Shown in pieces: positions 17,971 through 59,272 of a stretch of 64,000 nucleotides of DNA (positions are counted from its first letter, which is position 1; the number at the start of each line of letters is the position of its first letter). The DNA comes from Blastocladiella emersonii ATCC 22665. Taxonomy: Eukaryota; Fungi; Blastocladiomycota. Both the position numbers and the translations under genes were made by a program. Where the stretch lies: positions 682,001-746,000 of the forward strand of contig JANHCV010000012.1 of NCBI GenBank assembly GCA_025594325.1, written 5' to 3'. Below the pieces are notes generated by a model that did no database searches, was not told the DNA's origin, and saw nothing but the letters and a program-made list of their open reading frames with translations.

Positions 17971-19187
17971 ATGAAACAAATGAACTCTATGCAACGCGTC
18001 AGGCTCAGGATTCCCGAGATCATCAACCAAATCCTCGTTGAGGCCGTGAACTTGCACGGCCCCCGCGAACTTGGCGCCATGGTCGAGTACGCTCGCGTCA
18101 TGCCGGCTGCGCGGATCCCGGGAGTCGTGCCAGCGATCCGAGCAATCCTTGAGCGCGTTTTTGCCGATGAAGCAACCATCCTAGGCCGCGTGGACTTGCT
18201 TCGGTGTCGGAAGCACTTTGACATGTCGCTTGAGCACACTACGGCGGTTATGGCGTCCGCGATGAACTCTAGGCATTACCGCGTGCTTGAGTTTTGGTGC
18301 GACTTGGGGGTTCCGCTTTGTCTTCAAGGCGGGTCCGAGCTTAGTGCGTCGCTGAGGATCCTGTTGGGTGTCCCGCGGCCTCAGGGATCTGAACCGGTTT
18401 GGCGTTCCCATGCTTTCACTGAACCTTTCGGACGTCGTTCTCGGTGCATCCCTGCCCAGCAGGGATCCATCCCTTTGTGGTTGACCTCGCCTTGTTGGCC
18501 ATGACCCAGGATGCCAGCATTTTGTAGAGCTCGCGACCCACTTTGAGCGTTACTTGAACACAACGATGCCCTCATCCGTCGTGCCCGCCGCGCCTGTCGA
18601 GCTTGTCGCTTGTGTTTTCAACTGGCACCGACTCAAGTCGCCCGACGCTCAGCGGCAATGCTCGCGGGGACATGAAAGAGTATCAAGTCCATTCGGCTGA
18701 CCCTGTCTCTGATACTGGGACACCGTTTCTTCGCCTCCCTGCGCTCGAGATCCTGGTCTTGAACGACGGGCAGTACGCGTTGCCCACTCTCCAGCGCATC
18801 ACGCCGTACATTGTGCCCTCACTCCGCGAGCCCCACTTGCCTCACTGCCACATCGACGATGACGTCCCCGCGCTGGCTGCGGTGATGCCGCCGCAACTCG
18901 AGTTTCTCAAGCTGTTCGACAACAAGATTAAAGACCCTGGCGTCTTGTCACTTGCGCCCGCGCCTCCGCTGACGCTGAAAACGCTTCACATCCAGAATAA
19001 CCTGATCGACGAGGTCGGCGCCTACTTAATCCTTCAGACGCGTTTGCAGACCAAGATCACGGCGCTGCAGTTTTGGCTGCAGTCGCGAGTTCCGGAGGAT
19101 TCCTCAGCTCGATACATGTTCAAGGCTGTGCTTCCGAGCTGCAGGGATGAGGGAGAGGCTCCACGGTCCAGATCAGAGAGCGCATAA
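17971..19187 (+). pseudogene. LRR-family paralog 1 (N-module intact; exon 2 frameshifted, with stops and a large internal deletion)
   Basis: MKQMNSMQRVRLRIPEII N-module; VELVACVFNWHRLK is followed almost directly by FLRLPALEIL and the C-terminal LRRs. Confidence 0.75.
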
Positions 19188-19253
19188 AATCTAGGTATTT
19201 GCGCACAAGCGCTACGGAGTGATGTGGGGTGTTGTGGCATTCGAAAACTCGAG

Positions 19254-19311
19254 AAACGCGTCGCCGCGCGGTCAACTGTGCTGGGCTGTCAAACCTGTCA
19301 AACTGTCCCGC
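19254..19311 (+). promoter_or_regulatory. 58-bp conserved upstream module, copy A
   Basis: AAACGCGTC-N4-CGCGGTC-N9-GGGCTGTCA-N3-CTGTCAA-N-CTGTCCCGC, 60 nt before ATG 19371; aligns without gaps to copies B and C. Confidence 0.7.
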
Positions 19312-19370
19312 AGTTGATCGGAGGCGTCGATCGGAGGCGTCCAACGCTCGCGCTGCTCAACTGTACTCTC

Positions 19371-21188
19371 ATGCACATGATGAAGCGAATGAACTTGATG
19401 CAACGTGTCAAGCTCGCAATCCCAGAGCTGATCGAGCGGATTTTGGTGGAAGCCGTGGCGCGACATGAGCCTCGCGAACTTCGCGCGATGCTCGAGTACG
19501 CCCGTGTCATGCCGGCTGGGCAGATTCCGGGCGTCATGCTGGCGATCCGCAAGCAAGTTGAACAAGTTTCTGCCGCCGACGCGACCAAGGAAGGGCTCGT
19601 GGAAGTGCTCTGGTTCCGCAAACGCTTTGGCATGCCACTCGAGCCTCGCGAAGCGGCCTTGGCGCACGCTGCTCAGAAGCGGCACTACGGTGTACTCGAG
19701 TTCTGGCGCGACTCGGGGATCCTGCTTCACTTTCCTTCGCGATCTCACACCCATATCTGCGCATGGGCAAAGGTTCTCCTTGGGCTTCCGCGTGACCGAT
19801 TCACTCGCCCGGTGCGAAGATTCGAGTCGTCGCATGAGTTGAAAACCTTGACTGACGCTGTTCTCTAGGACCCTGTAACGGTACCACCTTCGGGCGATGA
19901 ACTTGCGCAGAACATCGCCCACGCTGCACGCACGCAAGGCGTCGAGTCCGTCTCCGTGGCGTGGTCACGACTTACCGAGGCCGGGATCGAGTACTTGAAC
20001 GAGGCAATGTCCATTTCGTTGCTGCCCGTCAAGTAAGTGGAACTTGTCGCTTGTGATCTCGACTGGACCCGCCTCAAGGCACTCAACTTCCCGCCCTCAG
20101 TCAGCTCGCTCACGCTTGCCCTCAACCGGCTTGACGATGGATGCTACCCGGTTTACGCCAAGTGGTTACCCGACTCGCTTTTGTTGCTTTCCCTCCAGTT
20201 CGAAAACTATCTGTCGCCAAGTCTCGCTGCACGGCTCACGATGCTTCCACGCTCGCTCGCCTGCTTGACCATTGAAGGTTGTCCGCTCACGCCAGACATT
20301 CTTCGACCACTGCTCAACAGCTTGCCGCCCTTGCTGACCAGATTATGCCTCAGACGGACCCAGCTTGGCGATGAAGGAATCACGCTTCTCGCTCAGCGTC
20401 TTCCTGCCGGACTCGTTCACCTCGACGTATCTTACAATGGCATGGGACGCGATGGAGCTCGGAATCTCGCGCGTTGTCTCCCAAAGACGCTGAGGTCGCT
20501 CGACATCCCAGGCAACATCCTTGGCCCGAGCGGATTCTTCGCCATCGTGCACCATCTCTCCTCGTCAATCGAACAGCTCAACGCGAGTCACTGCGAGATA
20601 GGCCTGCTTGGTGTCAGTGCGCTCCTGCACTGCGAGCTGCCAAAGCTCACGTATCTCAACCTGACTGCCTCGTGCCGTGGCGGCTACGACGCGCCCCATG
20701 TCGATCTAAATCAGCCAGCCAATGTTGTACAACTCGCCCTTGATCCGGCCACCTCGTTTCCTCGCCTTCCAGCGCTCGAACTATTGAGCTTACAATTCGT
20801 GGCCCCATCGGGGAACGCTCGACTATTTGTCCCGCTCATTGTGCCCAGTCTTCGTCATCTCGATTTCAGCCGGGCTGACGTCGATGAAGAAGTTATTGTT
20901 GCAATTGCCAAGGCGATGCCGCCCAAGCTCGAGGTGCTCAACCTCTCCCATAATTGGTTTACTGACGCTGGCGCATGCCGCCTTGTGCCCGCGCTCCCCC
21001 GGACGCTCAAGTCGCTTTACCTCGACAGCAACCTCTTTGGCGAGCTCGCTGCCTACGCGATCCTGCAGAGGTGCATTCGCATCGGCGTCACCAAGCTCGG
21101 GATGAAGGGCATGCGGAGAATTCCCGAAGACTCGGAATTCTGGTTCATGTTTGAGACCGTGTATGGCGATGGCAAGAAGGCTTGTTGA
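19371..21188 (+). pseudogene. LRR-family paralog 2; intron 19812-19868; single in-frame TAA at 20034-20036 (possibly removed by a novel intron)
   Basis: Exon 1 (147 codons) joins exon 2 in phase 0. One stop, then an uninterrupted 383-aa LRR ORF ending FWFMFETVYGDGKKAC. Confidence 0.75.
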
Positions 21189-21406
21189 GTGAATGATTTC
21201 GTAAGTGATACACAATTTCTTGATTCGTCACTCTTTAGGCATGGAGCGGTCAAGGTCGCCAACACTTGGACGAGCGCGACCCGGCTAGCTATCACTTGCC
21301 CAAATCTGGAGGGTGTACTCATGACGCCGGGCAAGTGCTCCTATACGAGGTCTGCACGTGGGTGCTCGAGACAGAGCGATTGGGAGAGACCACCTTCGTG
21401 CGCAGA

Positions 21407-21464
21407 AAACGCGTCCCGACGCGGTCGGCTGATTCGGGCTGCCAAAGCTGTCAACCTGTCCCGC
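21407..21464 (+). promoter_or_regulatory. 58-bp conserved upstream module, copy B
   Basis: Same ungapped motif, 75 nt before ATG 21539. Confidence 0.7.
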
Positions 21465-21538
21465 GATCAGCCAGAGACGTCGCGACGGCGGGCGCTCAAC
21501 CACCGACCCACTTGAACAATGCAACCCACACAAACGCC

Positions 21539-23319
21539 ATGGAACCAATGAACTCTATGCAACGCACTAAACTTGCTATACCGGAGCTGCTGAACCAAAT
21601 TCTGGTCGAAGCGGTGAATTTACACCCCGCGCGAGAGGCTGGCGCCATGCTCGAGTACGCTCGCATTATGCCGCGCGAGTACATTCCGGATGTCATCCCG
21701 GCCATCCGAAAAAAGGTCGCTCGTGTATCGGTTGACGCCGCGACCGAGCACGGCTACCTAGCCGTCCTTCGGTGCCGCCGTCTTTGCGGGCTATCGCTTG
21801 AACACTCGGCCGACGCGCTTAAACGGGCTTCGGACAACCGAAACTATCGCTCTCTCAAGTGGTGGCGGGATTCTGGGCTCCCGCTTCAGCACGGCCTTGT
21901 CACTGCTCTCTGGGCCCGCGTCCTGCTTGGCGTTCCGCCGCTTGGCGACTCAGGCTTGGTGCGATTGACGTCGTCGTCTCCGAAGTTGACGGAACTAGAT
22001 TAACACCCTCCATTCACATATTTTAGGGGTCTGCGGATGCGGCAGCGCTGCCAGGTAATCGCGTGGCGACCGGCGACGCCACCGCCGGGTACCTTGTCCG
22101 CTTGGCGAAGCCTCAGGGCCTCGAGTCCGTTTGCTTGCAATTTCAACGATTGTCGAAGACGGGGATTCAAACTCTGAACCGCCTCATGACCTTGTCGGTG
22201 CTTCCCATTACCGCTGTGGATCTGGTCGCATGCGACCTAAACTGGAAGCGGTTCCAGGCGATCAAGTTCCCCCCGACCTTGCGCTCGCTCCGAGTCGGCC
22301 ACAATCGCATCCATGATGGCTGCGACCGCACAGCGGCACACTGGTTGCCTGCCGTTCTCACGTCGCTGCATATCTTTGCGGAAAACCTCAGGGCTTCGTT
22401 TTATGATGGGAAGTTCCAGTTTCTCCCTCAAGCGATGACTTCGTTGACTATCGAAGATTGCGACATGCGATCCAAAGCGATCAAACTGATGGCTCATGTC
22501 CTGCCGCAGACTCTCACCAAGCTTCACCTTGTCAGAATCGCGCTCGGGGACTTGGGCGTTATTGCCCTTGCTCGCCACCTGCCTGTCGGGCTTCTCGATC
22601 TGAACCTTTCAGGGAACTACTTTGGTCGCAATGGAGCCGGGGCACTCGCACTATTCCTCCCTCCAAACCTGAAATCTCTTGACGTTTCCCACAATATCTG
22701 CCTTGAGTCGGGCGGACTCATTGCGCTTGTCCAACACCTGCCCGCCTCAATCAAGTACCTCAACGCGGACAAGTCTGCCATCACACTTGTCAGCGCCCTG
22801 GCCATCTACTACCGCAAGCTGCCCAGACTCAAGACGCTCAAGTGCAGCGATCGAGTTTATATTAACGACCCGATTGACAGCAACGGTCAATTCTACAACA
22901 ACCGATTCCACTTTTCGTTTGATCCTGACACGATTCACCTTCGGTTTCACCAATCCGAGCTGGCTTGCTACGGTGGATCGCTTCACCTTCATCCCTTTGA
23001 CTTGGTTCAGCAAGCGCTTGTTCCAACGGTCCGTAACCTGTTTCTGAGTTCTTGCTTTATCGACGACGGAGCAGTTGATGTCCTTGTCAACCAGATGCCG
23101 CCCCGCCTCGAAAAACTTGATATCGCCAATAACTACATCACGGACGACGGTGCGGAGAGGCTCGCTGCTGCCCTCCCTGTTACCCTCCGCCTCCTTAGCT
23201 TTGACGGCAGTCTGATGGGCGAACGCGGCGAAAACGCACTCACCCAGGCTTTTGAGCGCATACAGTGGGAACGCAAAGCTAACCGCAAAGCAAACAAACA
23301 AGTTTCTTACGGAGTTTGA
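21539..23319 (+). CDS. LRR-family paralog 3, intact, about 570 aa (F-box/ankyrin-like N-module + RNI-like LRRs); intron 21959-22026
   Basis: 140-codon exon 1 joins the 22063-23319 ORF in phase 0. Repeats of the type LPxxLxxLxLxxNxxGxxGxxxLAxxLP. Confidence 0.8.
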
Positions 23320-23679
23320 CTTGGCCGCCGCCAGAGCATCGCATCAAGTGGGCGTTGAGTCTGGGCGCGTGTGAGCGTTGTGATCGTCTATGAAATATAT
23401 GTGTTTGATTGACGTGTTGCCACAATATTCTTCGCGAGAAAGAAATCCTTCCCGTGCATCGTGATCCGCGCAGGGGCCTTCTTGTAGCAAACGCGTCATT
23501 GCGCTGTTGAGTGACGAAGGACAACGCGAGGAGGCCACGGTACAGCTTGTCAGGGACGTGTACAGCTATTCAGGGATCTCTACTCCTTCCTTCGGTACCC
23601 TCACCCAGAGCGGGGTGAGAGGAGAATGTATTGTAGAGCAGGGTGTGCCGCTGCGGGGGTGCAGCGGCGCGGGAGCGAG

Positions 23680-24460
23680 GCGCGCTTTGCCGTCCTCGCT
23701 TACTAGTTTGAAACTGAACCCACTTTACAACGCGGGAATCAAGCAACTCGCGCAGTGTCTGCCCGCTGGATTACTTGACCTCGATGTTTCCTACAACGGC
23801 ATGCGTCATGATGGCGCACTTGCGCTTTCGCGTGCCCTGCCACGTACCCTTACGACTCTCAACGTGGCCGGTATTTACATTGGTCCAGAGGGGTTCTTTG
23901 CCATCGTCCACGGCCTCCCGAAATCAATCGAGCGGCTCGTCGCATCGCGTTGTGACATTGGACCGCTCGGCGCCAGCACACTGCTGCATCGTGACTTGCC
24001 AACCTCAAATTCCTCAACCTCAGTAGGCTGACTGACTCCGCCTCGTCCAATGTTGAGACGAGCGAGTCTGATAGCGTCGTTCAGGTCGCCTTTGATCCGG
24101 TCACGCCGTTCCCCCGACTTTCTGCCCTCGAGAACTTGATCATGGACAATGCAGCCGGGTCGCCAGGACACGCTCGCTTCATTGTCCCGTTTCTCGTGCC
24201 CAGTCGTCGGGAGCTTTCTCTTAAGCGGTCATGCCTTGACGACAGCGATCTCGCTGCGATTGTTGAGGCCATGCCGCTCAAGCTCGAGACACTTGACCTG
24301 TCCCGGAACCGCCTTACTGAGGTTGGGGCAAGCAAGCTCGCCCTAGGTCTCCTCTCCACGCTCAAGTCGCTCTCCCTTTCTTATGACCGAAACGGCGAGC
24401 TTGTCGCGCACGTGATCCTACGGACGTGCATCCGGATCGGCGTCAAGGACTTTCAAATTG
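23680..24460 (+). pseudogene. LRR-family fragment 4 (LRR part only, frameshifted)
   Basis: LAQCLPAGLLDLDVSYNGM...GFFAIVHGLP...MPLKLETLDLSRNRLTEVGA; no N-module. A degenerate copy of the upstream module follows at about 24488-24530. Confidence 0.7.
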
Positions 24461-26238
24461 CCAGTACCTCCACCACTCACTCCGTTCGGGTGTCAACTGT
24501 GCGGGGCTTTGCCCAACTGCCCTCTCGCAGCGATCACTCAGCGCAACGGACGCGTTGTGGACGCGTGGTTCAAGTAACTGCATGATTTATGAAGTGGAAC
24601 ACAAGGAACTCGCTTCAGGTGCAGCAGCGCTGACTGGGACCGTGCTTCGGATCCGCGTTAAATGGAGGGACACGAGAGAAAGGGTCGCGACGCCTCAGTA
24701 CCGCGCGTTGGAGCTGTCCCGACACGCCTACTTCTCTCGCTTTTGCTCGCCTTCCTGCTGTTGAGCTGGATTAAGTTGACTACGGACGGGACGGAGCAAA
24801 CTGAAGGTTGCCAACCGGGTCGCTTTTACTTCCTTCACTTAGCGCGCGCTTCCAGCGACTCAACTTCCCCATGGTCTCCCGCAACGCGACGAGCTTTCAT
24901 CTAAGGAACCAGCCGACAATGTGACCGTGTTCATCGCATGCCACAATCTAGTTTTAGGCCTCGAGCAAGCTTGGTTTCTCAGAAACGGACCAAGAGCGCT
25001 CAGATGAAGCGGGCCTACTGTGGAACGGTTGCGCAAGGTTGACGCGCGATAGGGCGGACCACGGGATGACGTTCGTTGCGACGTGGGACGCGTCAGCGCT
25101 AACCAACATCGTGTGCATCATGATGCACGCATGGGCGGAGCGCTTCGTCTCGTTCGTCCCCACCTGGCAAAACTTGCTCATGCAACAATACTCACTTCAC
25201 GCAAAACTTCGAGAACGGGAGGACTGTCAAGCTCGTGCTGACGCACGCCTGTCGGTGAGAAGCTGGCATCAGCGGCCGCGACGGCCTGCTCAGCTGACTT
25301 TCGCTCGCCTTCAGCTGCGCGGTGGTTGACGTGCACAAATTGCATGGGAAGCATATCAATGTCGAACGTCGTGATGATTCGCAGCGCGCATCAAATAGAG
25401 CTCGCCGACAAGGTGTTCTAGCGATTCAATAGCGCGTTCTGCCACCGGCCAGGTTGCAGCGATCATGAACAAAAGCGGTGAGCAGCACAGCCAATGGAGC
25501 CGCGCGTGCTTGCGCTGGAACGAAGTCAGCTGCGTGCTCTGCTCAGAACATAGCTCGCACCTCATACCGCTGAGAAGGAGATATCGAGTAGCTACTCGTC
25601 GCGAGGGCTCACGCGGCTTCGTCGCTCCGCGTCGCTCAGCGCAAAGTCCCGCGGCAAGTAACCAGGACGCGACGCAACGCTAGGCCTGGCGGGCACAACG
25701 GCAGTGTAGTAATAGCGGCGGCGGCGGCGGCGCACGAATAGCGAGTCCATCTACAGCAGGGGAAGGATAAGGACACAATGAGCAAGAATTTCGAGCTTGG
25801 GTCACCTCAGAGAACAAGGCACTGCAGCTCAGGCAACGTGAAAGCATCCTGCGGCATGCTTCTCCGCTCACAAGCTCGCTTAAGCAGCACTCGTGCAGCC
25901 TGAAGAGGACAGTGCGAAAGAGATGCCAATGGAACACTCAAGCCAACGGTCGAACGAAGCACAGCACAGCACTGCGCTGCGCGGGCTCCACCCAAAACGC
26001 TGCAGGAGAGACGGGACCAGCCTGCCGTCGATTTCATGATTTATGAGATCCATTGCATAGAGTAATTCAGCTTCATCGATTAAGGAGAGCAAACGGGAGG
26101 GGAGCGGAGCGGAAGCGAGAGCCGAAGCGAAGTGGCGCAACGCGACACGGGGAGTGATGTCATTGAGAAAAGTGTGACTGGAACGTGACGAAACGAGAGC
26201 AGAAAATCGCGGTCACTATAGCTTGGGCAAAGCCCCGC

Positions 26239-26334
26239 ATGCACGCGTACACTTCTTCGCAAATCCCTGCCAAGTCTCCGTTCTGGTTCATGCTGGAAAC
26301 GGCGTTCGGCGACGGCGACGACGAAAACGAGTGA
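26239..26334 (+). pseudogene. Orphan C-terminal tail of an LRR-family gene (fragment 5)
   Basis: MHAYTSSQIPAKSPFWFMLETAFGDGDDENE* matches the family tails IPEDSEFWFMFETVYG and VPKDWFFWFMHETAFG. Confidence 0.65.
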
Positions 26335-26804
26335 AGACGGACGGCTGTGTCGCGATTGATAAATACATCCGTTGCTCAGTGCAACATTTCGGATGACGAT
26401 GCATTTTTCACGCACACGTTCCGCGACCTTCAAGGTGTACCACATCACCCGCTTTTCGACCGGGAGGACGTGTCCGTGCCCCTCAGAGCGTTCGCACAAC
26501 CGCACTGCTGCGGACGCGGCGATCCTGGCAGGATGCGCGTGCACTCATACTCTGAACTTAATCGAGGCATATTTAAAGCATCTGCTCCGACTGCACGGCA
26601 ATCACTTCTCGAACTACCTGATCGCGATCAAGCGCGTCGCCGACTCGATCCGCTTGCGCAGCAGTCCAGGTCTCCCGCGTGAGCTGATGCCGCACGTGGC
26701 GGAGGGTTTGAGCCCGCGATTGAAGACCAGATACAAAGCGTCCATATGGTTTCAAGTAAATTCCTGCCAATGCATCGTAAACCGCACGATGGCCTTCTCG
26801 CGGC

Positions 26805-26862
26805 AAACGCGTCGCAACGCGGTCAGCCGATGGTGGCTGCCACTCCTGTCAACCTGTCCCGC
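26805..26862 (+). promoter_or_regulatory. 58-bp conserved upstream module, copy C
   Basis: Same ungapped motif, 57 nt before ATG 26919. Confidence 0.7.
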
Positions 26863-26918
26863 AGTGCGGCTTGAGACGAAGCGATCGCGGACGCTGGATC
26901 GCCGCTTCCCCCGTAGCC

Positions 26919-28773
26919 ATGGATGCAGCTCAAATGATGAAACAAATGGACTCTATGCAACACGTTAAGCTTGCAATTCCGGCGCTCTTGGACCAGATTC
27001 TCGTCGACGCGGTGAAGTTGCACCAACCGGACGAGGTCGGCGCCATGCTCGAGTACGCTCGTGTGGCGCCAAGAGCGCAAATCCCCGGCGTTATAATCGC
27101 CATCTGCAACCAAATCTCTCGCGTTTCGGCTGACCAGGCGACCATCTCGGGCCGCGCTGATCTGCTGCAGTACCGCCGCCACTTTAACATGTCGCTCGAA
27201 CATACTTCCGCGGCGCTCAAAAAAGGCAGCTGAAAATCGACATTTTCGTGTGCTCGACTGGTGGCGCGAGTCGCAGCTCCCGCTTCAAACCGCGGGACTT
27301 CTGTGGCCCACCTGGGCTCTGTTCGCGCTTGGTCTACTCTCACTCTATGAATATCGGGTACGGATCCCCTTTGTATTGAAAAGGAGTGTCCCTGGACCCC
27401 TGGCTATCCATAATGAACGATTGTACTGATTGATATGGGCCGCTTCTCCTCAACTCTAGCCGCCCGTTACCTTGCCAGCGGAAGGGGACACGAAGGCCCA
27501 GAAACTCTTGGATTCTGCGCGAGTCGATGGATTCGATGAGGTGAATTTGTACCACCAGCGCCTGACTATGGAAGGCATCGACCTACTTAACCAAGCCATG
27601 GCCAGCTCGGCGCAACCCATCAAGACTGCGTCCCTGCTTGGGTGCGATTTCAACTGGACTCGCTTCAAGGCGCTCAAGTTTCCTGATTCGCTCCGGACTC
27701 GGGAATTCGGAAATAATCGCCTTGACGATTATTGCGACCCTCTCCCGGGCAAGTGGCTACCCGAATCGCTTACGTCGCTTTACATTGAAGACGAATACTT
27801 TCGGTCTCCGCAGTTTCGTGCTCACCTTCACTTTCTCCCGTCGGCTCTCACTTCTCTAAGCTTTCGGGGTTTCCCTCTTGATGACGGTTTGCTCGAGGTG
27901 CTGGTCCATGGACTACCTCCGCTTCTTACCGACCTTTCACTCGCCGAGTGCGAGCTAAAAGACGTGGGTGTCAAAACGGTTGTCGTTAACCTACCACCTC
28001 GGATTCGCAGCTTGTCGCTTTCCAAGAACTTGATAACTCGCGACGGTGCGCGTGCTCTCGCTCGTCGGCTTCCCCCTAACTTGACAGCGCTTGACGTGTC
28101 GCTAAATCCAATTGGGTCGGACGGCTTTTTCGCGATTGTGCATCACCTTCCTCGAACCTTCGAGTGCCTCACAGCAACCGATTGCAAGTTTGGCGTATTC
28201 GGCGCAAACGCGCTTCTTCACCGCGATCTCCCGAGCCTGAAGCGTCTCACGCTCACCCAACTCGACGTGGAACTGACTGGCGAACCCGGTAATCCTTATG
28301 ACGAAGGTCTTGATGCCGTGTTTGACCCGGCCACCAACTTTGCTCGCTTTCCCGCGCTCGAAGTGCTTGCTTGACTTGGAATGGGCCATTCACTCATCTG
28401 GCTGTATTTCGTTCTGGACCCCCTACATTGTACCGACTCTTCGCGAGCTCACGCTCGCCCGCTGTCATTTGAACGACACCGATCTCGCGGCGCTTGTCAC
28501 GGTGATCCCGCCCCATCTCAAATTCCTAACCTGGCGCACAACGAAATCACGGATGATGGTGTCAAGGTTCTCGCTCCAGCCCTTCCCTCGACGCTCGAGA
28601 CGCTGCGCATCTACACGAATCCAATCGGCGTTTTCGGAGCGTATCTCATGCTGCAGACGTGTATCCGACTCGGCAGCGTCAAGTGCCTTCAAATGCACGG
28701 TTTGTCGATGGTGCCAAAGGACTGGTTTTTCTGGTTCATGCACGAAACCGCGTTTGGCCAACCCCAAGATTGA
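26919..28773 (+). pseudogene. LRR-family paralog 6, at least three frameshifts
   Basis: +1 shift in the A6 run at 27219-27224 (LKKAAENRHFRVLDWWRES resumes in the next frame); further shifts near 28370 and 28525. Confidence 0.75.
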
Positions 28774-28813
28774 GGGGAATTCATTCGGACTTTGGTGAAT
28801 AACATGATGTTTT

Positions 28814-31152
28814 TTACTCGCACAATCCACCGCGCACCTGATCGATCCGCGCCACCGCGCGACTCGCGTCGCGGTCGTTCCGGATCTGCTGCCACCACCG
28901 GCGCGCCGCGTCGTGCTGCCCAGACGCCTCGAGGTACGCAGCGAGCCGCTTGACGTCGATCCCGAACGCGGGCCGCGCGCCGTCCGCGATCGGCGCCACG
29001 CGGTCCGTGTACAGCGCGACGAGGTCCTCGGGCGTCATCGCCGCCACGGCCTCGCCGTCGTCCGTCTCGCGCGCCGCTGGATCGCTCGACAGGTACGGCG
29101 GGTACGGGCCGGGACACCGGCGCAGGAACGCGAGGTGCGCGGCGGCCGCGATCCCGCGGCACGTCTGGCCCGGCGATTGCAACGCGAGCACGGCGAACTT
29201 GTGCAGGAGGTCCGATACGTCGAGTGTGCCAGGCAGCCGCGCGGCCGCGACGACGGCGGCCTCGATGTTGCCCTGTGCCGCGAGCTGCGAGAGCACGCAC
29301 CGCGCGAGCGCCGTGATGTCGTCGGTGACGCGGGTCGAGCAGGCCTTGGGCTCACCCGTCGCCTGCGCGAGGCGGTGGAGCAGCTCGACGACCTGCATCT
29401 GCTCCGCCGCTGCTGCGGTGCCGCGGGACCGGCGGCACGTCGTGTCGTCCCACAGCAGCGTCGTGAGCACGACGACGTCTGCCATGTGGCCCGGCGAGAC
29501 GAGCGGCCATGCGGTGGCGAGGTCGCGGACGTGGTTCCAGTGGCCGCGGACGAGGAGATGCCGCGCGTAGGCGATGAGCGAGGCGAGGGCCGCCCGCGGC
29601 GCGGCGATGCGCACGCTGACGATGGGCCCACGCTGGAACACGACGAGAAGCGCCGAGTTGGGCGCCGCAGCCGGGCGCGAGTAAGCGTGCCGCGTCGCCG
29701 CGGGCTCGGGCGACCACGAGACGAGCGCGGGAGGGCAGCGGAATGCGAGCGACGGAAGCAGGTCGATGGGCGAGGGTGTGGTCGTGTCACGGCCGCGGGA
29801 AGCGAGCGACCCGGAAAGGCTGCAATCCATGGGGCGAAGAAGCGGGTCGAACACGGACAAACGGCCCGACGGGTACACGACCGCGGTCGCGACGCCGCGC
29901 GGATGGACGGCGATGTGCGACGGCGCGGCCTCGGGACCCGGAGTTTTGGCGACAATGTTCCACGACAAGTGGTCGGTCTCGCAGGTGACGCAGAGGTGGA
30001 AGAGCTCGCCGGTGGCTGTGCCAAAGTAGATGGAGGTCACGCCGTGTCGCCGCTCGCCGTCGTGCTCGGCGGACGCGGGCGGTGCGCTCGCGGCCCACGC
30101 CGTAATCGCGCTCGAGAGCCTGAGCACGGGACCGCGCGCGTCGAGCTCGGTCCAGGTGCCCTTGGTGAGCGAGTAGCCGCGGACCCAGGCTTCGCCGATG
30201 CCAGTCGAGTGCACGAGCGTGATGAGGGTGGAGCCGAGCGAGAGGTGGACAACGGCGAGCGGGTCCGCGGATTGGATTGTTCCCGTCGACTTGAGAAGCA
30301 TCCTAGGTCGGACGAGGTTAGGGTTTGAGTGGTGGCATGGCATGGGAGCAGCGAACCTTCCCTCGCGCTCGACGCGCTCGTACAGCTGGACGCTGTGCTG
30401 GGCGATGACGGCAAGATGCTCGCGGTGGCTTTGGAACCGCGAAAGCTCGGCGTGCGGGTAAGGTACGTCCACGAACTCGGGCTAGATGTACGATACGCGG
30501 GTCAGTTGACGCACCGCGGCAGACGGTTTCGAGAGCAACATACCCGAGCGGCCATGGTCGCGCGAGGATTCTGTTCGAGATTCATAATTTTGTGCCGCGT
30601 GCTGTTGTAGTAGAGCCGGATCTTCTCCTCGCCCGCGATTTGGGCGACGACAAAGTGCGGCTCAATGTGAGCGCCGGACCACCGCACGGGGCCTCGGATC
30701 GCGGCGGTCGTCGTCGCAGAAGCGGTTGAGTAGATCGCCTGCGGCCCGTCTCGCGCGGGCGGCGGGTTGACGACATTGGCAAGCATCGGGTCGAGCACGA
30801 CGGCGGACAAGTCATTCGAGTCGCCGTGGATGATAAGACGCACGAGAAGACCGGATGAGAGCGGGATCTGGACCGTGTTCTCGTCGTGCCACAGCAGACA
30901 CAGCGGTGGATCGCTCGTCAGGTGCGCCTCCAGGTTGGCGAGGGTCTGGCGGGTAGCGGCGGGCAGCAGGGCGGATGGCTCAGTCACTCGGCGGGCTGCA
31001 CCGCGCGTGGAGCGCCAGTGCTCGAACCAGTCGCCCTCGAGCGGGTCGGTGATCGACTCCTTGGTCCGCAGCGTGTACAGCGGGACGAAGGCATCGGCGT
31101 TCCGCGGAACATGGGCGGTCGTCCATATCGCAAGATCCAAGTGCAATTGCAT
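28814..31152 (-). CDS. WDPCP: WDPCP/Fritz (CPLANE ciliogenesis effector) homolog, about 758 aa; intron 30482-30543
   Basis: TLANLEAHL...LLWHDENTVQIPLSSGLLVRL...LSAVVLDPML resembles WDPCP SLKELEELM...KWKNKYVCQLLFGSGVLVSL...LEKVVIDRSL. PSHIAVHPRGVATAVVYPSGRLSVFDPLLRPM resembles PSLISCHPSGAILLVGSNQGELQIFDMALSPI (reference sequences recalled from memory). The 62-nt GTATGT...TAG intron is in phase 0. Confidence 0.8.
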
Positions 31153-31375
31153 GGTGCTACATCAGCTCTAGGGCTTCCAAAGAGTCTCCGCGGTGAGAAA
31201 GGCGGCCTGCAGAACGGCGGACGCGACGCGAGGGCGGAGACGCGTCGAGCCGACACGTGGCGCCCACAACGCGTTGGGGTGGCTTCGCCGATCGTTCGCC
31301 TCTCCCTCTATCTCTCCCCTCTCACAGCCTCAAAACTGACCGGCAGTTCATGTAACTCTGTGCATTGCACTCACC

Positions 31376-31749
31376 ATGACCATCACCAAGCTCGCCAACC
31401 GCGCCTCGGCCCTCGCGCCGCTCTTTGCCCGCGGGTGGAAGGACCAGCTGCCCCGCCGCGACGCCATCATGAAGTCGTACCAGTTCCGCGACTTCAACCA
31501 GGCCTGGCAGTTTATGTCCGCGATCGCCCTCAAGGCCGAGACTGCCGCGCACCACCCTGTGCGTACTGCCCGCCCGATCGCGGCTACTCGCGTGATCACC
31601 CCGCTGACCCCGCTCTTGTCACGTAGGAATGGTTCAACGTGTACAACAAGGTCGAGGTGACGTGGTCGACGCACGACGCGGACGGCTGCAGCGAGCGCGA
31701 TGTGAACCTGGCCACCTTCTGCGACGAGGTCGCTGAGAAGCTCAAGTAA
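31376..31749 (+). CDS. PCBD1: Pterin-4-alpha-carbinolamine dehydratase, 101 aa; intron 31559-31626
   Basis: The spliced product has the family signature [11 protein letters not shown]...[20 protein letters not shown]. Confidence 0.92.
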
Positions 31750-32138
31750 AATGCTTCCTTGACGAATATAGATCGAGAACTTTACGGGCGTGAGCCAGTA
31801 GTAAGAAACGTCGTTCAGCGGCGACGGAGGCGGCAGCGGGTCGTGATCATAACCGCGAGGCTTGGGCTTGCAGCCAGACACTCTCCGCTCCACGCGTCGC
31901 TGCACTCACTCTCTTAGGGCCCGCTTGGTTCAGATCAGGTGGATCAGCTGAAAAAGTTGCCACGTTTCACCTCACCCCCGTTCATCTCAGCGGCCGTGCG
32001 AACCAAACGCCCCGCTGGATGAACGCCCCCCCCCCCCCCCCCCCCGCAATAAAATCTTTCCCACCTCTTTGCAGCCGCGCTTATTGCAACGAATCAACAC
32101 CTAACCTCACGCATCGTGTTCTCGAGCCCTCAAACAAC

Positions 32139-33456
32139 ATGGACAAGGGATACAACCGCAAGCTGCGCGGCCTAATGCTCACAGCCGCCCTCGCTCTCCT
32201 GCGACGTCTCGCTGCGCGCAACGAGCGCCGCTCGTGGGAGCCTATCCGCACGTCCACGCTTTCTGGCGAGTCGTGGGTTCAAGAGCTGCTGACGTGCAAC
32301 AGCGAAACGCGTTTTTCGGAAATCGCCCGTATGCCCCGCGAGACCTTCAAGGCCATCTGCCGCCTGTTCCGCGACCGTGGCCTTCTCGCCGACGGCCGCG
32401 AGCTGTCCGTCGAGGCGCGCTTCATGGTTTTTCTTGTCATGGCCGGCGAGGGCAGCACCAACCGCAACCTCAGGGAGCGGTTCCAAATCTCTGGCGAGAC
32501 CGCGTCCAGGGTTCTGAAGCAAGTGCTCGACGCTCTGTACCGCCTGATGCCCGAGTTCATTGTCCAGCCGTCCGATTCTACGCCCGTGCATGAGCGCATC
32601 GCCCACGACCCGAAATACGCTCCGTTCCAGAACGCGGTCGGCGCGCTTGACGGAACGCACATCCCGTTTGTTGTGCCCACTAAGCTTCACGACTCGTTCC
32701 GAAACCGCAAGGGGACCATATACTCAAATGTCCTCGCTGCCTGCGACTTTGACTTGAACTTCACCTACGTTCTCGCAGGGTGGGAGGGCAAGGCGCATGA
32801 CTCGCGCGTGCTCTCGGACGCCTTCGCCCGTGGGTTCAAGATCCCCGCCGGCCGCTTCTACCTCGCCGACGGCGGCTACGCAAACCGCACGTCCATCATC
32901 GTGCCCTTCCGCAGTACCCGCTATCATCTTCGCGAGTTTGCCCGCGGCAAGGATGGGTACGTTCTCACTGCCATGACCATCACGTTGGCGCCATCTCATC
33001 TGCTTCACCAACGTACGTAGAGTTAAGAACCGCGAAGAGCTTTTCAATCTGCGTCACGCGTCGCTCCGCAACTCCATTGAGCATATCTTTGGCGTGCTCA
33101 AGAAGCGGTTCCGCGTCCTCTCGATTGGCGCGGCCTACCCAATCAAGACTCAAGTCAAGCTTGTGTACGCGCTCTGCACGCTGCACAACATGATCAACAA
33201 GTGGAACCAAGGCGGCGACGCCTTCTTTCGCGACGCCGAGACGGAGCTCCGGCGCGCGCGGGACGCGGCGCGTGAGGCGCCAGTGCGTGGGCGCGAGCCC
33301 CTGGACGACGAGAACGAGGAGGACGACGAGGCCGCTGTCCTCGAGGCCTCGCTGGACGGAGCTCGTCAGCGCGGTATCTCGCTTCGGAACCGCGTCGCAA
33401 ATGTTCTTTGGACCGAGTACAGGCGCGTCATGGCCGCTCGTGGGACCCATCTTTGA
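32139..33456 (+). CDS. Harbinger DDE transposase, 417 aa; intron 32957-33020
   Basis: GALDGTHI, GWEGKAHDSRVL, YLADGGY and, after splicing, EELFNLRHASLRNSIEHIFGVLKKRF; catalytic residues are intact. Confidence 0.92.
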
Positions 33457-33769
33457 AGGCGCGAAATAATTGTTGTACCCGCATGCATGCTGTAATATAC
33501 TGATTTGTCAAGTACTATAATGTTATATAAGCGATTCTAGATGATTTGACGCGTCGCTGAGGTCAGAATGCATCGGTGGAGACGCGTCGATCAATCACGT
33601 GACGTGTGAGACACTTTGCGAACCACGCGTTTCTCAACGAGTCGCGTCATTTTCGAGCCAAGGGTAACGATTGAAGATACGATGGACACAAAGCCAGATG
33701 TATTGGACACAAATGGGCGAGAACAAGGCCAGGAAGCAACGCGAGGGGAGGGGGACATGTGCGAGTGAG

Positions 33770-34234
33770 CTACTGAATGAAAATCTCGAGGATGCGCTTG
33801 CGCTTCGATTCGGACACGGCCATGACGCGAAGCGCTTGATCCTCGGTCAGGCGGGTGGCGACGTCGATCTGGTACTCTTCATTGTCGTTGTACGCGTCCT
33901 GGACCCATTCAAGTGCGGCGGTCAGGACGGGCTTGGAGTCGGCGGTCGCGACGCTCTGGAACACCTCCTTGATGCCCATGAGGAATTCCGAGTCCGAGAG
34001 GCGACGCGAGCTGCTGTCCGAAGTGCGGCTGCGCTTGCTGGCGGGGGCCGCGTCGTCTTGACCATCGACACCTTCCACGTCACCAGACTCCTTGCCGTCC
34101 TGCTCGAGGTGCGAGTACTCGCCGGTGGTGGTCGAGCTGCCCCACGAAGGAAAACAGCGTTTATATAGGCCGGGAAGCACAGCCTGAAGGTTTCGGGGGC
34201 GAGCAGACGGGCAATTCAGCGACGAGGGTTCCAT
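33770..34234 (-). CDS. Harbinger ORF2 remnant (C-terminal part of the partner protein, no recognisable Myb/SANT domain)
   Basis: Convergent with the transposase. Acidic linker, basic KRSR motif and a helical C-terminal segment. Only about 130 nt separate the ORF start from the TIR, leaving no room for a Myb domain. Confidence 0.5.
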   Translation of the reverse strand: MEPSSLNCPSARPRNLQAVLPGLYKRCFPSWGSSTTTGEYSHLEQDGKESGDVEGVDGQDDAAPASKRSRTSDSSSRRLSDSEFLMGIKEVFQSVATADSKPVLTAALEWVQDAYNDNEEYQIDVATRLTEDQALRVMAVSESKRKRILEIFIQ

Positions 34235-34391
34235 TCAGCTCATCCGGGGGTCGACCCAAACGCCGCGATGAACGCGACGGGGTGAAAATGCCACGTTTCA
34301 GCTGGGTGAACACCGGACCGTGTAAAATCGATTGATCCACCTGATTCACCCCGGAACCAAACGGGCCCTTACCTCGAACCCCAAACCTCAC

Positions 34392-36191
34392 ATGAAGCAA
34401 ATGGACTCTATGCAACGCGTAAAACTTGCGATTCCTGAGCTCGTGGCCAAAATTTTCGTCGAGGCGGTTAAATTACACGACACCGACGAGCTTGATGCCA
34501 TGCTCGAGTACGCTCGCGTCATGCCTCAAGCGCGCATCCCGAGTGTCACGGTTGCAATTAGAGCGCAAGTTTCGCAGCATGACGTTGAGGATGCGAGCAG
34601 ACGTGGGCGAGTCGACTTGCTGAGCGCGTACGGTCACTTTGGCTTCCCCATCTCGCCCGATACCGCGAAGGAAGCTATCGCCGCCGCCCAGAAGCACCGC
34701 TGCTACCGTGTCATCGAGTGGTTCCGGGACTCGGGCACGACCTTCGACTGTCCCGATCGGCCTTTGGGTTGGGTCCGTTCGAAGCTTGGCATCCCCCGGT
34801 ACCTTGTGAGTCGCGAGCCGGTACGTTTGCGTACAACCTCATCAGCACGCAGCGCCTTTCTGACGAATCTGATCAACCACTAGATGATCGGAAACCCTGT
34901 TGCAGCCGGCGATGCCGTCGCTCGCGACTACCAAGCCCTTGCCCTCACCAAGGGCTTTACCTCGATCGTCATTGATGAAGCTCGTTTGAGCATGGACGGT
35001 ATCCAAGCTCTCAACGAGGCAATGCGCTCCTCCGTCACACCGCTACAGACCATCGAGCTGTGCGCCTGCGATCTTGACTGGGCGCGATTCCGCGCGCTTG
35101 ATTTGCCGTCGACACTCGAGTCGCTTCGTCTTTACAAGAACACGCTCGACGACGGATGCACGCTCCCTGCGACTCCGTGGCTTCCTGCCTCGCTGTCCGA
35201 GCTTATGATTTCTGGCGAGCGGTTCTCCTCACGAGCAACGGGGAGCCATCTTGAGCTTTTTCCCAAAACGCTGACCGTGCTCTGCTTGGACAGCTGCGAC
35301 ATCTCGATTGAAGCGCAGCAGCAGCTTTTCCCCAACCTTCCTGCGTCTTTGACCAAGCTTGGTCTTAATGGTCTCAAATTGTGCGACGACAGAATCGACG
35401 ACCTTGTCGAGTTTCTTCCTGCAAACCTGGAAGAGCTCTCACTTGCATCCAACGAGATCACCACTTCCGGCACGAATCTCCTCGCTGAACATCTTCCGAG
35501 TTCGCTCAAGGTGCTCGTGCTCCATGGAAACGAGCTTGAATCCGGCGGTTTTTTTGCGATCGTCCACCGCCTCCCTGCTGGCATTGAAGAACTCGGGGTG
35601 TCCAACTGCTGCATCGGCCCGCTCGGCGCAACCGCACTTCTGCATCGTGGTAGATTCCCTCATCTCAAGGTTCTCGCAATGGGCTCGAACAATCAGGAGG
35701 ACTTCCCCATGCATGGACCCGCTTGGGCAAATGGCACCGTCGCGGCCGTGTTTTGCCCAGCTCGGCCACCTGCCTTCCCGCGTGCGCTCGAGGAGCTCGA
35801 CCTCTCCAACGCTTTCTTGCCCCGAAACGGCCTCAGCTTTTTTTCTACGATGATCCCGTCCACGCTGCGCAAGCTCGACCTGTCAGACCGTGGCACGGAC
35901 GATGTCGAGCTCGAGATCATTACCCGTGTTATGCCGCCGCTGCTCAAGACTTTCGTCCTCGACCAAAGCGAGGTCACGGATGTTGGCGCAGCCGCGCTCG
36001 CACGCGTCATTCCCCCGACTCTTCGTCGCCTCTCCATGTGCGGCAGCGCAATCGATGAGCTCGGCGGGTACTTGCTCCTCCCGGCGTGCATCAAGGCGGG
36101 CGTCACGGACCTGCTCCTGGGCGACAGTGAGATGGACAGGAACTCTCAATCATGGTCCATGATCCGCATGGCTTACCCTGATACCGCGTGA
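34392..36191 (+). CDS. LRR-family paralog 7, intact, about 578 aa; intron 34821-34883
   Basis: 143-codon exon 1 joins the 435-aa LRR ORF through a GTACGT...CTGAT...TAG intron in phase 0. The ATG lies 23 nt from the transposon end. Confidence 0.8.
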
Positions 36192-36544
36192 GCCATGCTG
36201 GTTTAACAGTTAAAGAATGTATGTCGATTGATGCCGTGTCGCGTGCTCGATTCTGATTTTTGCATCCTTGTCGCGCGCGTCCACGCCTCCGTCATCGACC
36301 ATCACCGGCGGGCGCGTCCCGTGCTCATACCGTTACCCGCGCTGGCCACGCCCTAATGATTGGGACGTCGGCGCTGTTCATGGCGGGCGTCGCGACGCTC
36401 GTGTGCCGTGAAATAACCGCGCTGCTCGGGCGAGCCATGACTCTCGTCGTCATCGTCCCCCACATACATGCTTGTGAGATAGATTTTAGTATATGCAAGC
36501 ATCTGCGGTAGCCTGCACGCACAGGGTGAGCGAAGAGTCCGGAC

Positions 36545-36662
36545 GCAATGCGCCACGCACATGAGCATTGCTCTGAACTCCTCTTCGCGCCGTGTCGCAC
36601 TTGGCACACGCTCCTCTTCAACGCACTTCCCATGTATCACTGATTCATAGAACTACCCGCAA
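36545..36662. repeat. Three-copy dispersed motif, copy 1
   Basis: GCRATGCGCCACRCACRTG, then about 65-70 nt, then ATGTATCRCT-N4-CATAKAACT-N4-GCAA. Confidence 0.7.
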
Positions 36663-38240
36663 TTGACTCCGAGGGACCCTAAGTCTCACATTCCGGTCCA
36701 GGTCGGTGCGAAGCTTGGTTTCAAGCCGAGTCTCGTTTGCACTCGACCTGTCTCGCCGCGAGATGAATCGAACACTTTTACTGCAGGCAGCCCTTGATTT
36801 TGTCTGGACCCGATTATCGCATTCTAACGAAGCGAGTGTCGACGTGGTACCGCTCGTGTCATTTGTGGCCATGCCCGTGCCGTCGTCTGACGAGTTTTGT
36901 GCGTGCCAGGGATCTTGTTGCCTGGTGCGGGCTCGCATAGCATATGAGGTAGGTGAACCCTGAAGTTAAACGCTGCAGGTCGTTTTTGATTTTCTTTCCA
37001 AATGCGCGCGGACGGGCGCTTACACCTGATCCGTTGCGTTTTATGCAGAGGCTAGCAAATGGAGCGCAAGCTGACTGGTCCGCTCGTTTGGCACCCTGTA
37101 GTAGCCGTTGACTGAGGCGTGGGGCTCCAGGTGCCGGCGGTGACATTGCTGCGACGCCAGCACTTTCGACACGGCTGCTCACATTGTTCCTCACGCGGCA
37201 CACGACCGGGTTGTTCTCGAAGCACACAACCTTCACGCACGTGCTCACGCCAAACCATGCGGGCATGTATCTACACACTCGCTCTGGTATCTGGAATCGC
37301 AGCAGCGCGCGGGACCTTCGCCCTAGACACGGCTCGTTCGTGCGCCGTGAAAAGTCCGCGCCGCGCGAACGAGCCATGTCCTTGCGTTGGCCGCGTCCCG
37401 CGCACTGTACTGTTCGTTCGGGCGAGCTGCAATGAGTCTTGTCTCGTAGTTTGTGTGATGCGTGCGTGATAGACTTGCGTTTTGCATAGCCTCCTCGTCG
37501 AAGTTGCTGTCTGAGAATGTCTGCGCGAGTTTGAATAGTTGGATGCCCACAACTCCCTGTCGTTTGAATAGATAGCTCTCAAGTTACAACACTCCCCTGT
37601 ACCGTGACGCGTCGTCGTCGAGCGAGAACCAAGAGAACGCGGGCGTCTTGAGCTTGGCGGCGGCCATCATCGCCCGTTGGCCGAACGGATGGACTACGCG
37701 CGAGGGGTGAGGGTGGTGAGTACACTGCGCGGAGCACGACGCAAGGTGACTGACGCGCGCGCCGCGGCGCACGCACGCACGACGCGTGCCCGTGGATGAG
37801 GTTGCCGATGAGGAAGGAGGAAGGAGGAAGGAGCGGTCGAGGTCGGGTCGATGATGAAATGAAGCTGGGGCTCAAGCGCGCGCGAGCGTGTCGAGGAGGA
37901 TCGTGCCAAGCGAGAAGCACGTCGTCGAGGAGGCTCGTGCCGAGCGAGAAACACGTTGGGGATTCAAGAAACACGTCGAGGAACACGTCGAGGATCGAAT
38001 CGAGGATCGAGTACCGTAGCAGGCGGAGCAGGCGGAGCAGGCTGTAGTGCGAGGGAACGTACACGTCGTCGTCGGGCGCGGGGGTAGGGTAGGGAGGAGG
38101 TTTTCGGGTCAGCACCACTCGTCGAGCTCGAAGAAGAAGAAGACCTGCAGCGGCAGCGAGGCGAGAGCGCACACGTTCCATGGCGACCCGACCTGCGGCG
38201 GCGGCCTGCGACCCGACCGACGTGCGCGCGTGTGCGCGCC

Positions 38241-38346
38241 TTGACCTGGACCTTGACCGAGTTGACAACCGAGTTGAGCTGGGTTGAGCTGAGTTGACCT
38301 GACCGAGTTGACGCGCGCCGACCGAGTACCGAGCCGACCGAGTCAA
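38241..38346. repeat. Degenerate CCGAGTTGA-type microrepeat
   Basis: Repeated TTGACC/GAGTTGA/CCGAG units over about 105 nt. Confidence 0.6.
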
Positions 38347-38523
38347 CGCGCGACAACGAGCTGAGACCGCGCTACTGCTGCTTCTTGGTGTTGTTGTTCT
38401 TGTGCTTGATGATCACGGACCACACGAGCTTAAACTCCTTTGTCTTGGCGTTGGGCGAGCAGCTGGTGTCAAAAGAGCACCGCCGGTGAACTTGGCTGCG
38501 GTCGAGGAGCACAAGGCCGGTAC

Positions 38524-38639
38524 GCGATGCGCCACACACGTGAGCGGCTCGCTCGGTCTCCGCTTTGCGCCGCTCAGCTCGGTTTGAGGTCTCCCCATCC
38601 TGTCTACCATGTATCGCTACTTCATATAACTTACCGCAA
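38524..38639. repeat. Three-copy dispersed motif, copy 2
   Basis: Same two blocks with matching spacing. Confidence 0.7.
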
Positions 38640-39613
38640 TGAACTCGAGTGAACCATGTCATCGCAACATAGCTTGTGTTGACGCTCGCGGTGCTGCTGC
38701 AACATGCCCCGTTGGGGTTAACCCACAGTATAGCGGAAAAGACCTCTGCTTTTCATCCATAACCAGAATGAGAGACAGTCGCTACATGCTTTGACGTGAA
38801 GCAAACCCATTTGCTGCAAGACTGTCGATATTGTTCGTGCAGATGTCGATGACCCATCCCTGCCTGCTTTCGAACCAGATCTTAGCCCGATACAGCATGC
38901 TAAAATTCTGTTCGGTCTGTCAAGGCCGAGTCAATGTCGAAATTCGCAGGCCACATTTCGTAGCTCACCAGGTTTCGCGACCAGCTCATGCAGACTTGCA
39001 CTTGGTACGTGCCTCGATCAGGATCGCGGAGCTCCAGCCGACTCATCGTCAGCTCCCGTTTCTAGCTTACCTTGTGGTGTACATAGCGAAGCTGCATGTT
39101 GAGCCAGCTGGCACGATTGCTTGGCGCGACTAGCGTTGCACAAGGTTCCGCCGCCCACTTTTCACCGGCGGTGCCACAATATGCGCCCTGAACGACGATT
39201 CTTTTTCACATCACACCGGCAACTCGTTCTCCAATCCCTGGATCGACCTTGCCAAGTGGCAGCGGTGCGCGGGACCGTTATCTTCAACGCGGTCTGCTTG
39301 GGCGCCGTGAAAAGGCCGCGTCGCCCAAGCAGGTCGTGTCCTCGTACCGATTTCGTTCGGCGCCCTGTTCCGCCATCCTGGGTGGATCGATATAGAGGCC
39401 AGCGTTGTGATTGTGCTCGAATTGTTGATAAATCTGCAGTATGCTGATGCTCAAGTCGATCCTCACTCCTTTGAGCCAGGCGGGCCTCAACGCGTTCGGT
39501 TGTTCGCAAACGCACGAGAACCAACCAGTCTGTGAGAGCTCGAAACTAGTTGTGCGCGGAGACCTCAAGGCGAGTGGGCCGCGTGTCTGCGACGAGGAGC
39601 GAAAGGCCAAGGC

Positions 39614-39735
39614 GCGATGCGCCACACACGTGGCCGCCCGCTGCTGTGGATTCTCATCAGCACAGCGGGGAGGCCCGGTCCGGGCTCCCCTTCATCGACT
39701 CATAATGTATCACTCACGCATAGAACTGCATGCAA
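39614..39735. repeat. Three-copy dispersed motif, copy 3
   Basis: Same two blocks with matching spacing. Confidence 0.7.
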
Positions 39736-40253
39736 CGGAATTATATGCACCACGGCGCCATGCAGCGTGCCAATTTCAAGTCTTCTTTGGTCATCCTTGT
39801 CGTCTTGAGTTCGGCGCGCCGTGCTGTGCTAGCCCGAGGCTCCCAGAGCCGACCGCACCGGTATATCAAGGAGAATATTGGTGTACGTGAGCAGACGATC
39901 AGCGAAACTGTACAGGTACTGAACCTGGCTGTTCCCGCGTGCCACCGATGTTCAACTCATGTCTCGTTCCGTTAGTTTGACGGAACGCAGCGAGGCAAAC
40001 TGGAGTCAATCCATGAATTTCTCTGGCTCGCCGGTGGATAAGCTGTTCACATAATATTCGCGCCTCGCTCCAATGTCCAAGGGCATTCCAGCGTCATCGC
40101 CGAGCTGGGTGGCGGGTTCTCAGGCGGTCCTCTCACGAACCACGAATTATCTGAGCTTTTCGCGAACGCCTACATCCGTACGTCCGTTTCTCACGCAAGA
40201 CCGATCGGGGTTATGCGTGCGGGAATCTAACGTGTTGAGTTCAGGTGGAATAA

Positions 40254-41066: not shown

Positions 41067-41154
41067 GAAGAAGACGCCTGCTGTCGCAGCGATGCTTTCC
41101 GCCCACGCCTCTTGCTCAATAACCTATGCTAAACTGATGAATTAACTTGCTGCA

Positions 41155-59138: not shown

Positions 59139-59272
59139 GGGCCCGTTTGGTTCCGGGGTGAATCAGGTGGATCAATCGATTTTACACGGTCCGGTGTTCA
59201 CCCAGCTGAAACGTGGCATTTTCACCCCGTCGCGTTCATCGCGGCGTTTGGGTCGACCCCCGGATGAGCTGA

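Follow-up and report, generated by a model that had tools for sequence, protein, structure and literature searches.

Old tandem paralogs of a putative ankyrin and leucine-rich-repeat adaptor family in Blastocladiella emersonii

The stretch of DNA analysed here, called the window, comprises 64,000 nucleotides of the blastocladiomycete fungus Blastocladiella emersonii ATCC 22665 (contig JANHCV010000012.1, positions 682,001 to 746,000). It contains seven loci of one gene family (L1 to L7), all on the forward strand, found using tblastn and hidden Markov models (HMMs) built from the copies. A full copy encodes about 570 amino acids and consists of a three-helix N-terminal module (the N-module), two divergent ankyrin (ANK) repeats, a linker with a predicted intron, and leucine-rich repeats (LRRs) of the ribonuclease inhibitor (RI) type. 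The explanation we favour, with slightly more belief than doubt, is that the seven loci of the cluster are old paralogs encoding a soluble ANK-LRR adaptor that is apparently specific to Blastocladiella and its relatives.

HMM matches to the N-domain, which covers the N-module and the ANK repeats, start at 17971, 19380, 21539, 26937, 34392, and 57975, with E-values from 1e-42 to 1e-69. LRR-exon sequence is found behind each of these six N-domains, and an LRR-only fragment gives an additional HMM match at 23684-24462. A first-pass annotation made from the sequence of the window had described an array of eight loci, all of them with an exon 1. The array is real, but it has seven members, as the tail at 26240-26334 belongs to the LRR-only locus L4; exon 1 is present in the other six and missing from L4. 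The exon-1 motif described earlier is reproduced by the consensus derived from the copies, which for the N-module part reads LxIPEhhxxIhxxAV … YARVMP … IPxV. Two loci, L3 and L6, have intact frames. L3 (21539-23319) encodes 570 amino acids from exon 1 at 21539-21958 and exon 2 at 22027-23319, separated by a predicted intron at 21959-22026, while L6 (34392-36191) encodes 573 amino acids from exons at 34392-34805 and 34884-36191, with a predicted intron (GTGAGT…TAG) at 34806-34883.

Phase-0 introns of 57-102 nucleotides, with GT..TAG boundaries, were predicted from sequence in five copies, and all of them are placed in the same variable linker, as the first-pass annotation had also suggested. 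In each case the N-domain frame runs to the GT donor and the TAG acceptor restores the LRR frame. Besides those of L3 and L6, the predicted introns are found at 19812-19868 in L2, 27358-27459 in L5, and 58395-58460 in L7. These predictions are backed by a second, intron-less array elsewhere in the genome, where the junction corresponds to the variable linker. As the N-domain and the LRRs of this sister array are encoded in one uninterrupted open reading frame (ORF), the N-domain and LRR parts in the window belong to one protein, and the earlier proposal of exon shuffling is not borne out.

The sister array is found at the locus of protein P0001 on contig JANHCV010000009.1 (518891-540627 reversed, here L001), and has five tandem copies within L001:1-12000, lacking the intron at the domain junction. 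Two copies are intact ORFs without a gene model (L001:2418-4211 and 4913-6709), and two further copies are broken. P0001 (H9P43_007151) is the sole annotated copy, leaving four of the five unannotated. Its frame is interrupted by a TGA at the W of LEWWRDSG, a stop codon that the annotation bridges by a non-canonical 'intron'.

The conclusion that the second half of exon 1 encodes two ankyrin repeats is supported by profile comparisons, by the predicted fold, and by feature searches, and to this extent the ankyrin-like character given to exon 1 in the first-pass annotation is confirmed. Pfam found no family at E ≤ 1 on the N-domains of the window, and no direct Ank match. A profile of the six N-domains gave 1,108 matches when searched against 1.84 billion proteins; its positions 62-125 match five to nine consecutive units in proteins from Zopfochytrium, Nowakowskiella, Allomyces, and Blastocladiella, and these units are scored as Ank_4 by Pfam with E-values of 1e-12 to 1e-26. 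An AlphaFold2 model of the N-domain, with a mean local confidence (pLDDT) of 82, has helices at residues 14-28, 31-43, and 50-61, followed by two helix hairpins. Residues 64-135 of the model superpose on many solved ANK domains, including those of TRPA1, cpSRP43, FEM1B, Notch, and AnkB, with Z-scores of 5-6.5, which is modest for a helical repeat, and root-mean-square deviations of 1.8-3.7 Å. Both an atlas shape search and a search using language-model features lead from the N-domain to ANK families, while Foldseek against the PDB and Swiss-Prot models returned just generic helical repeats at E > 1.

Exon 2 encodes the LRR arm. Pfam LRR_6 is recognized above the gathering cutoff in four copies (34-65 bits, the cutoff being 23.4). 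The repeats start exactly 26 amino acids apart in L2, L3, and L6, with the consensus LPxxLxxLxLxxNxhxxxGxxxLxxx, so the alternating repeat length of 28 and 29 residues of the RI type is not found. Seven regular repeats are followed by an irregular insert of 40-120 amino acids and then by two to four more repeats. The closest solved relative is ribonuclease inhibitor (E 8.6e-24), and next come axonemal RI-like LRR proteins, GALA, and NLRP5, NLRP14, and NLRP3, the NLRPs having E-values of 1e-9 to 1e-13. The RI-like nature of these repeats had been recognized already in the first-pass annotation. Beyond LRR_6, Pfam detected nothing in the window copies, that is, no NTPase (NACHT or NB-ARC), death-fold, or other signalling domain, and the protein has no convincing transmembrane segment.

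The paralogs are old. For all window pairs, the number of synonymous substitutions per site (dS) is between 0.95 and 3.7 and the apparent ratio of non-synonymous to synonymous rates (ω) is between 0.13 and 0.41; since dS is saturated, the duplications are ancient and the pairwise ω values are unreliable. The window copies are the products of ancient local duplication. In a phylogenetic tree they form one clade (support 100/98), with L6+L7 and L1+L2+L3 as subgroups, and the LRR-bearing forms are monophyletic relative to the ANK-only relatives (94/94). The two intact sister copies are the least saturated pair, with a dS of 0.75 and an ω of about 0.3 that exceeds 0.5 in no 60-codon window. Some 70 codons (around amino acids 430-500) are almost free of both synonymous and non-synonymous differences between L001:4913-6709 and L001:2418-4211, while the proportion of synonymous differences (pS) is about 0.5 elsewhere. 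The pattern suggests recent gene conversion between the neighbouring copies.

These data bear on the proposal that the family consists of innate-immune or self/non-self LRR sensors without a NOD domain, diversifying under pathogen pressure. LRRs of the RI/NLRP type would fit such a function, and so would tandem arrays rich in pseudogenes (five of seven copies in the window and three of five in the sister array) that are situated in low-GC islands with active transposons. However, the signalling domains that were searched for using Pfam are absent, ω is low both among the window pairs and in the least saturated pair, and the paralogs are ancient rather than recently diversified. Nor is the variability concentrated on the concave LRR face, where the first-pass annotation had proposed a test for selection: non-framework positions are equally variable on both sides of the repeat, the identity being 0.06-0.38 for the strand face and 0.09-0.21 for the helix face. 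We thus consider the sensor explanation very improbable, and the immune- or effector-like diversification ascribed to the array earlier is unsupported.

The N-module, approximately the first 60 residues, is conserved more strongly than any other region of the protein. It is 56% identical within the window clade and 41% identical to the sister array, compared with 26-39% for the LRRs, and in the closest pair, the two intact sister copies, the proportion of non-synonymous differences (pN) is at its lowest there. The module recurs only in blastoclad proteins, namely Allomyces P0021, B. britannica P0033, metagenomic P0094, and B. emersonii P0001. Its first helix carries the conserved motif LxIPE(L/I)hxxIh, an LPxE followed by a hydrophobic heptad, in which P15 and I21 are invariant. 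Modelled in isolation (pLDDT 77), it has helices of 15, 13, and 12 residues.

The helix-1 motif resembles the first helix of an F-box, and this raises the question of whether the proteins are substrate receptors of Skp1-cullin-F-box (SCF) ligases, the N-module being a degenerate, Skp1-binding F-box and the ANK and LRR parts recruiting substrates for ubiquitination. A conserved head and a variable repeat arm encoded in tandem arrays is the typical layout of F-box families, and the LRR period of 26 amino acids is the same as that of FBXL-type repeats. There is also a transitive link: hhalign connects the N-module to the N-termini of chytrid ANK proteins (probability 86%, E 5e-6), and among 17 such N-termini, three match Pfam F-box-like (best E 3.9e-5) and two match F-box. 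On the other hand, neither F-box nor F-box-like was found by Pfam at E ≤ 1 on any window copy, though one of 16 N-modules of the family scored an E of 0.2, and a PDB-profile search of the N-module gave no match. The long helices of the model also speak against an F-box, and no F-box chain was found among 19 Foldseek matches or the top 50 VIA matches, which is weak evidence for so small a domain. The language-model features of residues 1-64 lead to ANK families, and helices 2-3 of the chytrid N-terminus profile have weak alignments both with an ANK repeat (2aja, E 0.19) and with FBXO42 (E 0.83). The N-module may equally be an N-cap helix followed by one degenerate ANK repeat. All in all the SCF explanation seems unlikely, and of the F-box suggested in the first-pass annotation there remain the helix-1 motif and the weak transitive link, neither Pfam, PDB profile, fold match, nor features lending it support. 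Somewhat less likely still is that zoosporic fungi have in the N-module a docking module of their own, new and functionally analogous to an F-box or a SOCS box, by which substrate arms of the ANK-only and ANK-LRR kinds are connected to a common ligase or signalling hub. If so, hundreds of largely unannotated proteins in Blastocladiomycota and Chytridiomycota would belong to an adaptor system so far hidden.

If the family encodes cytosolic adaptors, as we favour, the conserved head formed by the N-module and the ANK repeats would dock one common partner, while the divergent LRR horseshoe would bind copy-specific targets. For the role of common partner, a cullin-type ligase subunit is a candidate that is as yet unproven. 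The family would turn over slowly, through duplication and frequent loss. Several points weigh against this explanation. The adaptor logic is something we infer from the conservation gradient alone, and the gene models are predictions: a search for sequencing runs matching 19300-23400 and exon 2 of L3 listed no RNA run, and the four runs that were aligned are DNA contigs of one sample. GC content at third codon positions (GC3) is 0.64-0.69 in the family compared with 0.83-0.88 in neighbouring conserved genes, a value about 0.2 lower, which points to weakly adapted codon usage and perhaps to low expression. Finally, L3 and L6 are each compromised at one edge, so the entire window array may be non-functional.

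Five of the seven copies are disabled, by a nonsense codon, frameshifts, deletions, or transposon insertion; the first-pass annotation had counted six decaying loci next to two intact ones, of which the latter number stands. L1 (17971-19187) has an intact N-domain ORF at 17971-18378, but LRR positions of approximately 72-288 are deleted, and the LRR remnants at 18530-18640 and 18708-19187 lie in other frames, so that the pieces are spread over three frames. L2 (19380-21188; exon 1 19380-19811, exon 2 19869-21188) is broken by a single in-frame TAA at 20034-20036. An intron rescuing the frame is considered unlikely, since it would remove the conserved LRR N-cap. The TAA is present in three DNA-run contigs that apparently derive from the assembly's own sample. 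All four runs aligned to the window are DNA contigs of that one sample and confirm the assembly only; one of them has a loxP-like linker at its read ends and was read as a mate-pair library. L5 (26937-28773; exon 1 26937-27357, exon 2 27460-28773) has three frameshifts: exon 1 has one, in an A-run near 27220, and the other two are in exon 2. L4 (23684-26334) is a 5'-truncated LRR fragment without exon 1, in which about 150 amino acids of exon 2 are gone; its body (23684-24499) contains one frameshift and is separated from the C-terminal tail (26240-26334) by a 1.74-kb insertion. L7 (57957-59138; exon 1 57957-58394, exon 2 58461-59138) is truncated after LRR 6.

Contigs from elsewhere in the genome touch the N-domain sequence at 19695-19717 and 21569-21588 and then run into different sequence. 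One such unmatched extension, translated by eye, resembles the N-module helix and hints at more paralogs beyond the two arrays.

Transposable elements have struck both within and beside the array. Two copies of a PIF/Harbinger element were identified by a DDE_Tnp_4 match (E 5.6e-11), inverted ends (GGGCCCGYTTGGTTC), and 3-bp TTA target duplications. Copy A, 2,452 bp on the forward strand at 31917-34368, is flanked by TTA at 31914-31916 and 34369-34371. Copy B, 2,455 bp on the reverse strand at 59139-61593, sits at the end of L7 and is flanked by TTA at 59136-59138 and 61594-61596. The copies are 100% identical over 2,353 nucleotides and inverted relative to each other. As each has its own target duplication, they represent independent recent insertions of an active element; the matching duplications at each copy also rule out an inversion between them. 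The truncation of L7 predates the insertion and was not caused by it, as the frame still stops two codons later when copy B and one target duplication are removed. The insertion in L4 (24500-26239) is 1,740 bp long and has perfect 17-nucleotide inverted ends (TGCGGGGCTTTGCCCAA), found nowhere else in the window, and no ORF of at least 100 amino acids. Most likely it represents a DNA transposon of unknown class that is non-autonomous and may have a 2-bp TG target duplication. When it is removed the tail rejoins L4 in frame, which shows that the tail is the C-terminus of L4, split by the insertion, and not an orphan left by unequal crossing-over.

A conserved module 60-120 nucleotides 5' of the ATG is common to L2, L3, and L5 (19260-19330, 21419-21490, and 26817-26890), and it is diverged in L1 and L7. 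In L6 it is replaced by Harbinger copy A, which stops 23 nucleotides 5' of the ATG, and the native upstream and promoter region of this gene is thus lost. L3 in turn lacks the conserved C-terminal tail, CIRIG…FWFMxET, in all frames. With L3 missing its C-terminal cap and L6 its native promoter region, the family is mostly dying in the window. The array might then be wholly relict, all seven loci being non-functional and any function residing in paralogs elsewhere. The five overtly broken copies, the loss at the edges of the two remaining ones, the low GC3, and the fact that protein searches surfaced no gene models for the window loci are all in keeping with this. However, L3 and L6 retain 570-573 open codons despite a dS above 1 to every paralog, which is unlikely without past constraint, and the complete identity of the Harbinger copies means that L6 was hit very recently. 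A wholly relict array is thus rather improbable, and the adaptor explanation is kept as the preferred one.

Within the data that could be reached, the family appears restricted to Blastocladiomycota: the N-module was seen in no other group, and its fusion with LRRs was seen in B. emersonii alone, in agreement with the lineage-specific family suggested by the first-pass annotation. Word-indexed protein searches were uninformative as to distribution. Exon 2 of L6 retrieved just P0001, a hypothetical protein, and one unrelated LRR protein, residues 1-135 of P0001 retrieved only P0001 itself, and an intact sister copy retrieved nothing. The family was not found described in the literature searched, either for Blastocladiomycota or for comparable tandem arrays, and the paper on the B. 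emersonii assembly says nothing of ankyrin, leucine-rich, or F-box genes.

The family is an example of repeat proteins that escape both Pfam and gene calling in poorly annotated early-diverging fungi. Should the conserved head dock a common partner, the family would open a way to study how zoosporic fungi assemble variable repertoires of adaptors; if it is not a docking module, the arrays illustrate cleanly how old tandem paralogs erode in low-GC islands with active transposons. Either way, counts of domain gain and loss for these fungi are biased by missing gene models.

The GC content of the window is 0.65-0.72, falling to 0.56-0.59 in the paralog-bearing stretches. The low-GC islands, with values of 0.56-0.60, at 18000-28000, 32000-42000, and 58000-60000 in the window and at L001:1-10000, hold the family arrays and transposons. 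Outside the family, the window contains a tandem duplicate of about 4.2 kb (47609-51003 and 51819-54484; 80-92% identity) with ORFs that have no Pfam match. An ORF just 5' of L7 (56968-57633) has a sub-threshold match to a fatty-acid-synthase beta insertion domain (E 1.7e-5, 25.5 bits with a cutoff of 27).

When compared with known systems, the closest are ANK proteins of chytrids and blastoclads having an 'LPxEII' motif and VLEWW-type repeats, such as Allomyces javanicus KAJ3357586, B. britannica KAI9223998, and Nowakowskiella KAJ3124999. These share both the N-terminal module and the ANK subtype and are true sequence relatives, but they have four to nine ANK repeats and no LRRs, while the window family has two ANK repeats and an RI-type LRR arm. 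The Legionella F-box/ANK protein AnkB (PDB 5k35) likewise has a short helical N-terminal module directly before its ANK repeats, and residues 64-135 of the N-domain model superpose on residues 62-142 of AnkB with a Z-score of 5.6. However, the superposition stops short of the N-terminal part of AnkB, and AnkB has no LRRs.

FBXL proteins of the Skp2 and Grr1 type resemble the family in having a small helical head followed by LRRs of 26 amino acids, and in expanding as arrays in which the head is conserved while the arm varies. They differ in that the window family has two intercalated ANK repeats and no F-box detectable by Pfam, PDB profile, or fold, and in roughly half of its repeats the LRR consensus shows Asn instead of Cys. 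Ribonuclease inhibitor and the LRRs of NLRP and NLRC proteins are the best solved relatives of exon 2 by sequence. Their repeats alternate between 28 and 29 residues while the window family has a strict period of 26, an insert after LRR 7, and no NACHT domain. ROCO/LRRK proteins have N-terminal ANK and LRR arms followed by a Roc-COR GTPase and a kinase. The order of ANK and then LRR in one chain is thus the same, but the window family ends after the LRRs.

With respect to evolution, the F-box and BTB repeat-protein expansions of Parachlamydiaceae are large lineage-specific birth-and-death families, mostly under purifying selection and with many pseudogenes (PMC4209131). These families and the F-box families of plants and nematodes have recognizable ubiquitination domains, whereas the head domain of the window family matches no Pfam family; what they have in common with it is birth-and-death evolution, purifying selection, and pseudogenes.

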